Notes: generated by a model from the sequence alone, not told the origin. DNA of 60,338 nt from Octopus sinensis (GCF_006345805.1 NW_021832252.1:1-60338), one strand, 5' to 3'. Numbered from the stretch's first letter, positions 4,471-53,009 are shown. A program made the numbers and translations.

Positions 4471-5768
4471 CTATGGTTTCTCTCCTGTATGAATGTTTTT
4501 ATGAGAGGTTAAAGAGGGCAAGCAAGACGATGATTTACCACAAATATCACACTCATACAGTTTCTCTCCAGTATGAATGGATTTGTGATAAGTAAGAGTA
4601 TGCTTATGGGAGAATGATTTACCACAAATACGACATTGATATGGTTTCTCTCCTGTATGAATGTATTTGTGTTTAGTAAGGCCTATCTTCTGAGAGAATG
4701 ATTTACCACAAATATCACACTGATAAGGTTTCTCTCCTGTATGAGTGGATTTGTGTCTAGTAAGGTTACTTCTCTGAGAGATGATTTACCACAAATATCA
4801 CAGTGATGTGAGTTCTCTCCTTTATGAATGGATTTGTGAGTAGAAAAGGTTACTTTTTGAGAGAATGATTTACCACAAATATCACAGTGATATGGGTTCT
4901 CTCCGTATGAATGTATTTGTGAGAAGAAAATACTTTTTGAGAGAATGATTTACCACAAATATCACAGTGAAAAGGTTTCTCTCCTGTATGAGTGGATTTG
5001 TGTCTAGTAAGGTTACTTCTCGAGAGAATGTTTTTACCCACAATATCACAGTGATAAGGTGTTTCTCCTGTATGAATGGATTTGTGAGAAGTAAGGCTGT
5101 GCTTATGGGAGAATGATTTACCACAAATATCACCACTGATATGGTTTCTCTCCTGTATGAAGGATTTGTGAGAAGTAAGGCTGTGCTTATGGGAGAATTG
5201 ATTACCACAAATATCACACTGATATGGTTTCTCTCCTGTATGAATGGATTTGTGAGAAGTAAGTCTATGCTTTGAGAGTATGATTTACCACAAATATCAC
5301 ATTCATATGGTTCTCTCCTGTATGAATGGATATGTGAGAAGTAAGGTTGCGCTTATGGGAGAATGATTTACCACAAATATCACACTGATATGGTTTCTCT
5401 CCTGTATGAATGGATTTGTGAGGAGTAAGTCTATGCTTATGAGAGAATGATTTACCACAAATATCACAGTGATATGGTTTCTCTCCTGTATGAGTGGATT
5501 TGTGTCTTGTAAGGTTACTTTTACCAGAGAATGATTTACCACAAATATCACACTGATATGGTTTCTCACCTGTATGAATGTATTTGTGAGAGGTAAGGCT
5601 ACTGATATGAGAGAATGATTTACCACAAATATCACAATGATATTGTTTCCCCCCTGCATGAATGAACTTGTGAACAGTGAGATTTCCCTTATTAGAAAAA
5701 GTCTTTTTACAGATATCACATTGGTATGATAACTTTTTTCTTTCTTTTGTCATCTCTTGAGGATTCAT
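4471..5768 (-). pseudogene. C2H2 ZNF gene, ~15 fingers, frameshifted after finger 5 (pseudogene or sequencing errors)
   Basis: [17 protein letters not shown] leader, CxxC/HxxxH fingers with TGEKP linkers, TAG at 4471-4473. Several 1-bp indels at 4780-5300. Confidence 0.85.
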
Positions 5769-6095
5769 TATTGTTCTATGGTATACAAGCACAACATATA
5801 ATTTTGCTTCCTTTTTTATATATTTCTATTGCTTATATTTCCAGCAGTTTTGATCTTCATCAATATCTGAAGATGATACAAACACCTTTGCAGATATCTC
5901 CCGCTCCAAACAGAATGTGAAATACTTTAGCAAATATTCCAGGCAATGATGGAAACAAATGTTGCCATTAATTCAGAAGAAATATTTCACAGTTTTCAAC
6001 CATAGACAAATCATATAAACAGAGTTATGTCAAATATTTATAACATCTTCCATTAGATGATCAATATTCATGAAGTATCACTAACATTTCACCTC

Positions 6096-6135
6096 CTGAA
6101 ATGACACAGAAACAGAAGATATAGGAAAGACTTAA
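6096..6135 (-). promoter_or_regulatory. Conserved splice acceptor of the ZNF coding exon
   Basis: Pyrimidine tract ending TTTCTGTGTCATTTCAG. Also at 11176(+), 23225(-), 32346(+), 45016(-), 53337(-). Confidence 0.7.
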
Positions 6136-6248
6136 AAAGCAGAGATTCAACTATAAAAAATATATAACTACATCTTCATAATGATAAACTGTGGATATAA
6201 TCCTTTAATTTCTCTTTGAAATTTATTTATGGTAATTTATAATATGGT

Positions 6249-6370
6249 AACCCTTTTGTTACCATATTTCTGCTGAGATTCAGTGTGTTTCTTTCAATTA
6301 TTTTAAATATAATAAAGAACTTAGTGAACTAACTTAGTTATCATTCAACAAGTGTTAGGAACATAAATTC
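6249..6370. mobile_element. Truncated piggyBac-like MITE
   Basis: Left ~120 bp of the element that is complete at 53489-53711. Confidence 0.7.
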
Positions 6371-49732: not shown

Positions 49733-50250
49733 GGATCTTTTCCTTTTGAACGGCAGTTTTCAACACAATTTCTAGTTAACTAAACACTTTTAAGCTTCGT
49801 ATACTGGTAGAAGGTGTTTATAAAACATCATTTTTTCTTGGCTTCATTGAGAAAATTCTATAGTTTGTAACACATTTCCACTTTAAAATCGAGCATTTCG
49901 GCAATTTTAACCAATTAAATATGTCCATTTGGAGTCAAAACATACCGTGCTGTATGAATATGTCCCTTGTTTAAGAAACAGATTGAGTTTGTTTACATTT
50001 GCGAAAAAAAAAAGATACGCTTCCCCAACCCCTAACTCTAACTAAACCTAACCCTAAAATAGATTGAAATGCAAAGATCGATACTAGGGTTATAATTATG
50101 GGTGACATTTTCATTTGACACCGTTAGAAAAAAATCCCATTTTCTGTAAAAATGATGTTTTATAAACACATTCTACCAGTAGACGAAGTTTAAAAGTGTT
50201 TAGTTAACTAGACATTGTGTTGACATCTGCCATTCAAAAGGAAAAGATCC
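49733..50250. mobile_element. MITE with 8-bp TSD (duplicate of 2239-2754)
   Basis: Flanks gcgcaaac / acgcaaac. Confidence 0.85.
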
Positions 50251-51256
50251 ACGCAAACTTGTACGAAGTACAGACGTCTGCGTGTTAATATACATCTCAG
50301 GAAAAACAGCCTTCTCATATTCAATAAGATTGGTGGCACCCTGGTAGTACATATCATTGTGGAAAACGTAAAACCACCCATAATTGTTATATATATATTA
50401 ATTACCAGAGTGACCCACGACTTGACTGGTTACAGACGCTGAGTACTATTTACGAAAAGTGGCCCGCTGCGCGCCATCGCGCTAGCTAGTTGTGACTAGT
50501 CAATCCACGACTACCTAGCGCGAGTGCACGTATGCAAACTAATAGATGCGCGCATGTATTATAAATCCTCGAGTATAATTCTCATTTTACCCCCCAAATT
50601 TAAAGGTCAAAATGCCAGGTTGGATTATATAAGGTTAAAATGAAAATATTTTTAAGCAATGTCCGAGTCTCTATTTGCTGTCCGGCAATGTTTATTCAAA
50701 CGCATTTTGTGATGTCGGGCGTGAAAATACCTTAAGCTAAGCCTGAAAGCAATGAAGTCATAAAAGAATCATCCATAACTTGCAGTAAGCAACATTTATT
50801 AAACGTTATTACTGTTATTTCTTTATTTTCTGCAAACAAAATACACAAAAAAGCTACACGTTTGCATTATGTTATATATACAATAATAATAAAGGACGTT
50901 ACCATATACATTTTTACAAACCAAGGATGTTATATAGACCTCCTTGACTCAGGTTAGAGAAGGGGTGCATATTATATACAAGGTTTAGGTTTTTCAGAGG
51001 TACAGCCCCCTAAAAATTCCCCTGCGTATTAACTCAAGAGCGGACTACACTCAAAGATTTAGATATGTATTTAAAGGCTGTATATCAAATAATTTTTTTT
51101 TTTTAAAACAAGGTAAATAATTTTTTCAAACAAATAAATAATTATCAACTAATTAGGGAGAGAGTCAGTTTAGATGAGATGCAGTTTGGGTTCATGCCAG
51201 GGAAAAGCACCACTGATGCTATATATTTCTGGTAAGACAGATGCAGGAGAAATACC

Positions 51257-51923
51257 TGATCTTTTTCTTTTGAACGGCAGTTTTCAACACAATTTCTAGT
51301 TAATTAAACACTTTTAAACTTCGTATACTGGTAGAATGTATCAAAATAAAACATTTTTTTCTCTTGGCTTTCTTTAGAAAATTGCAATTTGTAAGTTTAA
51401 CGTAGTTGAATTTTTCGAATTTTAACCAATCAATGGCCTCTATTGAGCTAAAATCATTTGCTGCGTCTAAAACTGAGACAACCCTAAATTTTAGCCTTTC
51501 GTTTTTTTTTTCTTAATTGTTAAATTAATTTAAGGATAATAATTAAGAAAGAAAAAATGAAAGGCTAAAACAAAAGCAAAAACTCAACAAAAACAAAACG
51601 AATAATTTTAGACACACGTGTAACAATTAAATTAATTTAACAATTAAGAAAAAAAAACGAAAGGCTAAAATTTAGGGTTAGGGTTAGTGACAGGATGTTG
51701 TATCAGTTTTAGATGCAGCAAATGATTTTAGCTCAATAGAGGTCATAGGATTGGTTAAAATTCGAAAAATTAAACTACGTTAAACAAACAGATTACAATT
51801 TTCTCAAGAAAGCCAAGAGAAAAAAATGTTTTATTTTGATACATTCTACCAATATACGAAGTTCAAAAGTGTTTGGTTAACTAGAAATTATGTTGAAAAC
51901 TGCCGTTCAAAAGGAAAAGATCT
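51257..51923. mobile_element. Foldback MITE (duplicate of 3767-4437)
   Basis: Long inverted arms with the same flanks. Confidence 0.9.
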
Positions 51924-51956
51924 GACTTAGTGTAATTTACTGCAGATATTACAGTT

Positions 51957-53009
51957 CTATGGTTTCTCTCCTGTATGAATGTTTTTATGAGAGGTTAAAG
52001 AGCGCAAGCAAGACAATGATTTACCACAAATATCACACTCATACAGTTTCTCTCCAGTATGAATAGATTTGTGATAAGTAAGGCTATGCTTATGGGAGAA
52101 TGATTTACCACAAATATCACACTGATATGGTTTCTCTCCTGTATGAATGGATTTGTGAGGAGTAAGGCTATGATTATGAGAGAATGATTTACCACAAATA
52201 TCACACCTATATGGTTTCTCTCCTGTATGAATGTGTTTGTGAGAGGTAAGGCTACTCCTATTAGGAAATGATTTACCACAAATATCACAGTGATAAGGTT
52301 TCTCTCCTGTATGAGTGGATTTGTGTCTTGTAAGGTGACTTTTATGAGAGAATGATTTACCACAAATATCACACTGATATGGTTTCTCACCTGTATGAAT
52401 GTATTTGTGAGAGGTAAGGCTACTGATATGAGAGAATGATTTACCACAAATATCACAATGATATGGTTTCTCTCCTGTATGAATGTGTTTGTGAGAGGTA
52501 AGGCTACTTTTCTGAGAGAATGATTTACCACAAATATCACAATGATATGGTTTCTCACCTGTATGAATGTATTTGTGAGAGGTAAGGCTACTGATATGAG
52601 AGAATGATTTACCACAAATATCACAATGATATGGTTTCTCTCCTGTATGAATGTGTTTGTGAGAGGTAAGGTTACTCCTATTAGGAAATGATTTACCACA
52701 AATATCACAGTGATAAGGTTTCTCTCCTGTATGAGTGGATTTGTGTCTTGTAAGGTTACTTTTATCAGAGAATGATTTACCACAAATATCACACTGATAT
52801 GGTTTCTCACCTGTATGAATGTATTTGTGAGAGGTAAGGCTACTGATATGAGAGAATGATTTACCACAAATATCACAATGATATTGTTTCCCCCCTGCAT
52901 GAATGAATTTGTGAACAATGAGATTTCCCTTATTAGAAAAAGTCTTTTTACAGATATCACATCGGTATGATAACTTTTTTCTTTCTTTTGTCATCTCTTG
53001 AGGATTCAT
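51957..53009 (-). CDS. C2H2 ZNF, intact ORF, 12 fingers
   Basis: [17 protein letters not shown] leader, 12 uninterrupted fingers, TAG at 51957. Acceptor at 53337. Exon 1 not recognised. Confidence 0.9.
   Translation of the reverse strand: MNPQEMTKERKKLSYRCDICKKTFSNKGNLIVHKFIHAGGKQYHCDICGKSFSHISSLTSHKYIHTGEKPYQCDICGKSFSDKSNLTRHKSTHTGEKPYHCDICGKSFPNRSNLTSHKHIHTGEKPYHCDICGKSFSHISSLTSHKYIHTGEKPYHCDICGKSFSQKSSLTSHKHIHTGEKPYHCDICGKSFSHISSLTSHKYIHTGEKPYQCDICGKSFSHKSHLTRHKSTHTGEKPYHCDICGKSFPNRSSLTSHKHIHTGEKPYRCDICGKSFSHNHSLTPHKSIHTGEKPYQCDICGKSFSHKHSLTYHKSIHTGEKLYECDICGKSLSCLRSLTSHKNIHTGEKP

Follow-up and report, generated by a model that had tools for sequence, protein, structure and literature searches.

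Probable gain and loss of whole zinc-finger units in recently duplicated genes of an Octopus sinensis gene cluster

The zinc-finger array of PRDM9 is the classic coding minisatellite. In the models of Smith and Stephan, the repeats at the edges of an array that undergoes unequal exchange reportedly diverge and persist, while the interior repeats turn over. Duplication and deletion of fingers have been called 'a common path for divergence' of Kruppel-type zinc-finger (ZNF) genes (PMC3126818), and primate orthologues differ most often in how many fingers they possess (Nowick et al. 2011, PMC3126818); in the mouse, the array sequences of KRAB zinc-finger protein (KZFP) paralogues are reported to change through 'drifting and shifting' (Kauzlaric et al. 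2017, PMC5363842). Large expansions of ZNF genes lacking KRAB are known from cephalopods (PMC12513265) and from fish and other metazoans, among them the FiNZ-ZNFs, with a link between transposable elements and ZNFs across metazoans (PMC10547256). Here we analyse a cluster of zinc-finger genes in a stretch of 60,338 nucleotides from Octopus sinensis (GCF_006345805.1 NW_021832252.1:1-60338), referred to below as the window. Two of its genes, A and C, lie in the two copies of a segmental duplication; their arrays agree at both ends and differ inside, and these interior differences were probably produced by the gain and loss of whole 84-bp units through out-of-register exchange, and not by the replacement of cassettes.

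Genes A, B and C and the duplicated segment

Fingers were detected in a six-frame scan with the pattern C-x2-C-x12-H-x3-H, with Pfam and with Tandem Repeats Finder. The window, whose G+C content varies between 32 and 47% (AT-rich), contains more than 120 C2H2 fingers in about ten tandem arrays on both strands, all with an 84-bp period, and therefore represents a eukaryotic poly-ZNF gene cluster. The TGEKP-type linkers and the 28-amino-acid (84-bp) period are those of tandem C2H2 (Kruppel-type) poly-zinc-finger genes, and the Pfam families zf-C2H2 and zf-H2C2_2 matched 11 stretches (E=2e-62 and 6.5e-94). A preliminary description of this DNA had placed three poly-C2H2 genes on the minus strand near 5, 44 and 52 kb; they were located at 4471-5768 (A), 42913-44639 (B) and 51957-53009 (C), with the following parts:

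4471-5768, minus strand: gene A, 15 finger units; unit A1 starts at 5720, stop codon at 4471-4473
4636-5384, minus strand: units A5-A13, present in A only
4384-4467, minus strand: A16, a degenerate relic finger past the stop (1 difference from C13, 9 from B21)
43836-44639, minus strand: open reading frame of gene B, from the ATG at 44639 through 9 fingers to a TAA stop at 43836
43836-43919, minus strand: unit B9, a chimera
42913-43835, minus strand: units B10-B20, 11 units past the stop of B
51957-53009, minus strand: gene C, an intact open reading frame of 350 amino acids with 12 canonical fingers and zero insertions or deletions (indels)
52206-52709, minus strand: units C4-C9, present in C only
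52038-52121, minus strand: unit C11, possible junction unit of a nine-unit deletion

For A a mere handful of fingers had been listed, but the array comprises 15 units. Its reading frame breaks near 5312, within the linker of A5, and as assembled A encodes five fingers only. The third array, B, does have an interior of its own, the (L/V)KCNL series, which was confirmed in the unit comparison; what had been missed is that its frame ends past finger 9, with 11 units beyond. The units B19 and B20 are the counterparts of A14/A15 and C11/C12, and in all three genes a degenerate relic finger (A16, B21, C13) lies past the stop. The atypical first finger, with its linker HAG(G/R)K(Q/P)Y, is present in A, B and C as described, but five genes carry it and not three, since its 27-nt core recurs exactly in two further genes, D (at 22822) and H (at 37137). 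A, B, C, D and H are paralogues, members of one poly-C2H2 subfamily defined by this common first finger.

The surroundings of A and C are made up of the following segments:

1-6370: A copy of the duplication, its left side cut by the window start; the homology stops sharply at 6370
47492-53610: C copy of the duplication, collinear with 1-6370
1-2993 and 47492-50490: distal downstream tract, 0.17% substitutions, 99.8% identity, continuing past the window start
3768-4425: palindrome of about 650 bp directly 3' of A, near-perfect, with arms of up to 174 nt and 93% complementarity
42200-42881 and 51258-51922: the other copies of the palindrome, 3' of B and 3' of C
6371-7830, plus strand: array E, degenerate, with many frameshifts; nearest relatives of A5, A7, A8 and A13 (3-7 differences)

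The duplication is at least 6.4 kb long, its left end lying beyond the window. In the upstream flank (5721-6370 in A coordinates) the two copies differ by 2.6% substitutions (about 97.4% identity), and in the proximal downstream flank (2994-4425) by 3.2-4.4% (about 96%). The non-coding parts had been judged by eye to be 95-99% identical, a figure borne out by the 96-97.5% measured near the genes and the 99.8% measured distally. The edge of the distal tract is sharp, identity dropping to about 96% at 2994 (Fisher p=1e-21), and its longest identical run spans 1164 bp (permutation p <5e-5); the tract looks like the product of a later conversion event or of a second duplication step. Collinear flanks of 96-99.8% identity that end at a sharp right-hand breakpoint are the marks of a recent segmental duplication. 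That A and C might be two haplotypes of one locus was ruled out: the right-hand breakpoint is clean, with different sequence beyond it, and the two genes are therefore true paralogues.

Array E, which is truncated, begins mid-finger exactly where the A/C homology ends (6370/53610). One arm of the palindrome overlaps the post-stop relic finger. B and C differ by 6% in the palindrome and by 14% in the upstream flank.

Correspondence and turnover of finger units

The arrays were cut into 84-bp units and all pairs were compared. Seven pairs of counterparts emerged between A and C: A1/C1 (2 differences per 84 bp), A2/C2 (0), A3/C3 (2), A4/C10 (2), A14/C11 (5), A15/C12 (3) and A16/C13 (1). The remaining A-C pairs are 4-39 nt apart, most unrelated pairs differing by at least 8, and the low values outside the counterparts are due to internal copies in C (A2 is identical to C7 and has 1 difference from C5). 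The same map was returned by dynamic programming on whole units when the cost of a unit gap was low, C4-C9 and A5-A13 remaining unpaired; higher gap costs force weaker pairings between the A and C interiors, at 6-10 differences. Single-linkage clustering (at most 4 differences) gave identical groups. Fingers 1-3 and the last finger are thus common to A and C, as the preliminary description had stated, but the sharing also includes the penultimate unit (A14/C11) and the relic finger (A16/C13). Likewise, the interiors are indeed non-collinear, although the helix SHKHRL of A4, which had been taken as specific to A, has its counterpart in C10 (SHNHSL).

In the matched units the synonymous divergence (pS) is about 0.04, against 2.6-4.4% in the flanks. 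The matched units therefore diverge at the flank rate, with neither homogenisation nor acceleration and no conversion signal inside the arrays, as the comparison of flank and array divergence that had been proposed shows. Non-synonymous divergence (pN) in the matched units, though based on tiny counts, is 0.061 in the recognition helix and 0.013 in the framework. Such a concentration of changes in the helix would be expected if the interiors were positional counterparts whose helices had been remodelled by point substitution under rapid positive selection. The arrays, however, differ in length by 3 units (15 vs 12), and all length differences are of whole 84-bp units. When the A and C interiors are forced into positional pairs, they show 8-20 differences per 84 bp, at framework and synonymous sites alike, as opposed to 0-5 for true counterparts, and A4 is near-identical to C10 and not to C4. 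The unit matrices and the dynamic programming thus refute substitution as the cause of the interior difference, and we attach next to no probability to it. Full gene-by-gene collinearity with differences explained by substitution, which would have spoken against any turnover of units, was seen neither in these two analyses nor in the clustering.

The units also differ in how far they stand from their neighbours. Within each array, at least 20 differences separate the first unit from any other and at least 14 the last coding unit, while interior units are separated from each other by 0-26 differences, mostly about 5-20. The ends would have remained constant because the terminal units, being the most divergent, cannot mispair with the interior and are anchored by unique flanks.

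According to the model that we propose, segmental duplication of whole genes would have produced the pairs A/C and D/H (the latter described below) some 3-4% of neutral divergence ago, and the arrays would then have been altered mainly by out-of-register homologous exchange between 84-bp units, by way of unequal sister-chromatid or interchromosomal crossing-over, replication slippage or misaligned break repair. Each exchange would add or remove whole fingers, the reading frame being kept automatically. In the C lineage one event may have deleted nine units (A5-A13), and later C2-C4 (and C2 again) would have been tandemly duplicated in one or more events, yielding C4-C9. Out-of-register pairing would take place among interior units, leaving the outermost units and the unique flanks untouched. 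The sequences themselves show the correspondence of units, the private tandem duplications, one chimeric unit and the equality of synonymous and flank divergence; the direction of each event, the mechanism of recombination and any effect on DNA-binding specificity are inferred.

The private interior of C consists mostly of its own units. C2 and C7 have the same sequence, C5 is 1 nt away from C2, C8 has 2 differences from C3 and C9 has 4 from C4; C7-C9 is a young tandem copy of C2-C4. The duplicated units of C have a pS of about 0.008, compared with 0.04 for the A-C counterparts, and their gain is therefore later than the A/C split. Private near-identical duplications are not confined to C (C2=C7, C5, C3/C8, C4/C9): they are also found in A (A4/A6), in B (a block described below) and in D (about 30 units). 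Length differences of whole units, private duplicates with 0-4 differences in A, B, C and D, and the chimeric unit B9 are together the signature of unequal exchange.

The private units of A are distinct finger types, from which even the nearest relatives in the window are separated by 5-10 differences; only A6, with 3 differences from its neighbour A4, and A13, with 3-4 from units in E and B, have closer ones. The counterparts of A13 (SQKIGL) in B, namely B13 and B17, adjoin the shared terminal fingers there. The block present only in A, or at any rate its 3' end, must therefore be ancestral and have been lost from C. The 5' end of C11 reads TGTGAT, like that of A5, and the remainder matches A14 and B19, which begin with TGTCGT; C11 may thus fit a single out-of-register exchange of A5 by A14 that deleted nine units. 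Taken together, C appears to have lost 9 units and gained at least 3-5 within about 3-4% of neutral divergence.

Several observations weigh against this account. Apart from each other, C4 and C9 (PNRS-L) have no close relatives, nor has C6 (SQKSSL), the nearest being at least 5-9 differences away; either A has lost these units or C has taken them in from beyond the window. The order of the C interior, X Y Z X' W X Y Z, fits no simple single-step scheme, and several events are therefore assumed. The junction test for C11 reached only p of about 0.05, and the chimera tests of C5, C6 and C11 were weak (p=0.05-0.17). Finally, the consensus of A, and conceivably its unit count, may be imperfect, as indicated by an excess of indels in that copy, considered below.

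The preliminary description had proposed a constant frame with a variable interior. Its constant ends and the insufficiency of point substitution hold, but cassette-like replacement is not supported. Under such replacement, donor or pseudogene arrays would overwrite the interior by gene conversion, with the terminal fingers as anchors. Ectopic homogenisation has evidently acted at the locus, to judge by the step from 99.8% to 96% identity in the flank of A and C, and it is in other arrays that the closest relatives of A5, A7, A8 and A13 are found (E at 6703 and 7205, B3 and B13). The lesion-rich units A5-A12 are sharply bounded by pristine ones, as expected of an imported block, and C12 and B20 are 1 nt apart despite a B/C flank difference of 6-14%. 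On its own, a B-C conversion at the last finger is not significant with a single difference and was rejected. Against replacement, the best candidate donors in the 60-kb window are still 5-10 differences (88-94% identity) away from A5 and from A7-A12, and none reaches 95% identity, so that the window holds no silent donors of the high identity that conversion from cassettes presupposes, as in antigenic-variation loci or in immunoglobulin diversification templated by pseudogenes, where the expressed copy shows mosaic conversion tracts. Moreover, the interior of C is accounted for by copies of its own units, the matched units show synonymous divergence equal to that of the flanks, and turnover is seen in dead array segments too. 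Cassette replacement is therefore quite unlikely, and whole-unit exchange remains the reading that we prefer.

The dead segments in question are those of B. Between 43081 and 43835 a block of four units is repeated about 2.25 times with 0-2 differences per unit (B10/14/18, B11=B15, B12=B16, B13/17), and every copy has the same CAA-to-TAA stop and the same TGT-to-AGT Cys-to-Ser change:

43836-43838, about 43500-43502 and 43165-43167: the repeated TAA stop of B, with the Cys-to-Ser change adjacent (the second position is approximate, unit B13 being 83 nt long)

Since all copies bear the same stop and the same loss of Cys, the block was duplicated after inactivation. Unit B9 is a chimera that combines sequence of the LKCNL type (B12/B16) in nt 1-48 with sequence of the QKIGL type (B13/B17), stop included, in nt 56-84. 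Such an origin agrees with 17 of the 18 informative sites that precede the breakpoint and with all 7 that follow it (Fisher p=1.7e-5); the breakpoint itself lies between nt 48 and 56. Turnover in untranslated, post-stop segments of B indicates a mechanical property of tandem repeats and not a device for generating specificities. The claim that turnover outpaces point mutation stands as far as the units are concerned, with nine lost and at least three to five gained in C and about 34 in D that H lacks, but is not supported as a statement on such a device.

A further possibility is that part or all of the difference is non-biological, the array interiors, and above all that of A, being mis-assembled or badly polished because of collapsed or expanded repeats, by merged heterozygous array lengths or by hairpin errors in the assembly. 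The A copy contains about 20 private indels of 1-2 nt, at 3782-4216 and 4720-5384. With B as outgroup, substitutions are symmetric (10 derived in A and 9 in C downstream, 7 and 6 upstream), but on the A branch small indels are about as frequent as substitutions and on the C branch about ten times rarer; in the 650-bp palindrome, private small indels number about 10 in A and about 1 in C, and the 99.8% tract has 6 indels to 5 substitutions. A5-A12 carry about 10-12 indels, nearly all of 1-2 nt, with deletions outnumbering insertions and several in short homopolymers. Once these are removed, A5-A12 become eight canonical fingers with zero stop codons and essentially intact ligand codons, the second Cys codon of A9 being ambiguous after frame correction. 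The pattern does not look like that of long-standing neutral decay.

Nevertheless, the anomaly concerns single bases and not the order of units. A1-A4 and A13-A16 contain zero indels (P=0.002 at the flank rate), C none and B one; the units present only in A are distinct finger types and not scrambled copies; constant ends occur independently in the pairs D/H and F/G; and the clean right-hand breakpoint shows that A and C are not two haplotypes of one locus. An assembly artefact as the source of the interior difference is accordingly unlikely. The indels of A are either local errors of the consensus, due to a hairpin or to heterozygosity in array length, or real frameshifts that arose in a very recent burst; their excess on the A branch and the intact frame-corrected fingers suggest the former, their sharp localisation the latter. 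This question bears on the function of A and leaves the conclusions on unit order unaffected. The idea that the interior of A is an old, decayed pseudogene block shed by C was dropped as the leading view, the lesions being small indels and the frame-corrected units intact. A new specificity of the 5-kb gene, as had been supposed, is doubtful as well, with the interior of A frameshifted as assembled.

Parallel pairs and other features of the cluster

Two further pairs of paralogous arrays were recognised in the window:

18922-22910, minus strand: gene D, with the same first finger, about 44 units and several frame breaks
37090-38133, plus strand: gene H, the inverted paralogue of D, with the same ends and without the interior expansion
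17480-19904 and 37151-39561: D/H pair, flank divergence 3%
10594-13959 and 31776-34876: F/G pair, flank divergence 4.4-5%

D and H agree closely in their first four units (3, 1, 3 and 2 differences) and in their last six (4, 2, 0, 2, 3 and 0), the codon for the first Cys of H being replaced by one for Ser. At a flank divergence of about 3%, about 34 interior units of D are absent from H. Some 30 units of D are near-identical, of the form C(H/Y)(T/M)S(S/T/N)LDSHKHIH; among the 24 intact interior units only 7 nt sites vary, and the amino-acid differences in the helix are all at positions -1 (Y/H), +1 (T/M) and +3 (N/T/S), one further change, from Gly to Cys, lying outside it. The slightly older pair F/G is mostly collinear, with several whole-unit gaps. 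The flank divergences of the three pairs are alike (3-4% for A/C), and the cluster may have been assembled in a single burst of direct and inverted duplications.

In most genes of the cluster a stop codon stands at or beside the linker Tyr codon (GEKP*, GDKP*, GEKS*) and is followed by recognisable relic fingers:

4471 (A), 51957 (C), about 19350 (D), about 37705 (H), about 33590 (G) and about 12980 (F): terminal stops at or beside the linker Tyr codon

Nonsense mutations at this codon seem to shorten arrays. Alternative frames of the arrays are also open, and open-reading-frame length is for that reason misleading in such clusters.

Also present, in either orientation, are non-coding tandem repeats of period 140-154 bp with the core CCCCCACCCCCC...GCGAGCGCGC:

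24152-24408, 29333-29753, 30781-31192 and 41834-42183: non-coding tandem repeats, periods 140-154 bp

Immediately 3' of the palindrome of B there is another, distinct repeat of 152 bp, in 2.3 copies that are 99% identical.

Database searches placed the family at a distance from described sequences. A full-length protein search with gene C returned generic ZNFs only, at no more than 65% identity, and look-ups of the exact products of six open reading frames of the window found none on record. Rfam gave zero matches in the window, Pfam nothing in its nine non-ZNF open reading frames, and a metagenome scan with a 24-nt first-finger motif zero matches.

Relation to known finger arrays

The case belongs to the known biology of ZNF arrays and involves no new mechanism. 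Like vertebrate KRAB ZNF paralogues, the genes are clustered, segmentally duplicated poly-ZNF genes in which whole fingers are gained and lost in frame, substitutions are concentrated in the helix and many copies are pseudogenes or truncated. They differ from these in that no KRAB or other N-terminal domain was found: a Pfam search of the C reading frame for KRAB (PF01352) and PR/SET yielded finger families only, and the 3.5 kb upstream of C contain no minus-strand open reading frame of appreciable length, although short spliced exons may lie further away. The consensus CDICGKSFS and the AT-rich genome also set them apart and point to a non-vertebrate lineage.

With the PRDM9 minisatellite (PMC5351255; minke whale study) the arrays share tandem 84-bp units, unequal exchange and the greater stability of the terminal fingers. 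In the interior of gene D only, the likeness extends to near-identical units that differ mainly at helix contact positions. The interior units of A, B and C, by contrast, are 0-26 nt apart, with many pairs at 10 or more, and these heterogeneous interiors are therefore not a homogenised minisatellite of the PRDM9 kind; nor was a PR/SET, KRAB or SSXRD domain seen in the scanned reading frames. As for tandem arrays in the sense of Smith and Stephan, the terminal units are here too the most divergent and stable ones, while the interior units are gained, lost and locally homogenised; the difference is that the present repeats are coding, with selection on frame and helix superimposed.

The closest setting in terms of gene content is that of the C2H2 expansions of invertebrates and fish, which likewise consist of large, young, clustered families of tandem fingers without KRAB. 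A word-sharing search with the N-terminus and first two fingers had as its sole candidate a ZNF fragment of Octopus bimaculoides, only 50% identical. The account of the cephalopod expansions (PMC12513265) makes no mention of unequal exchange, gene conversion, tandem duplication or pseudogenes.

Taking into account the palindromes and the relic fingers, one may go further and regard these arrays as coding minisatellites with locally stimulated unit turnover and with the post-stop relic fingers as a reservoir, though this extension of the above is improbable. The 650-bp palindrome 3' of A, B and C is a candidate stimulus that may provoke breaks and misaligned repair, and relic fingers, whose duplication continues, may be re-recruited through stop loss or exchange. 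If true, this would amount to a built-in, PRDM9-like regime of diversification in a family outside the KRAB and PRDM9 groups.

For those who annotate such clusters, frameshifts in one copy may be consensus errors. Within a family whose relatives in the public protein sets searched are all distant (at most about 65% identity), the window offers a small, resolved example of whole-unit deletion, tandem duplication, a chimeric junction unit and turnover in dead segments. It supports the view that finger arrays in general are unstable at the level of the 84-bp unit for mechanical reasons, as those of vertebrate KRAB-ZNFs and PRDM9 are known to be unstable.

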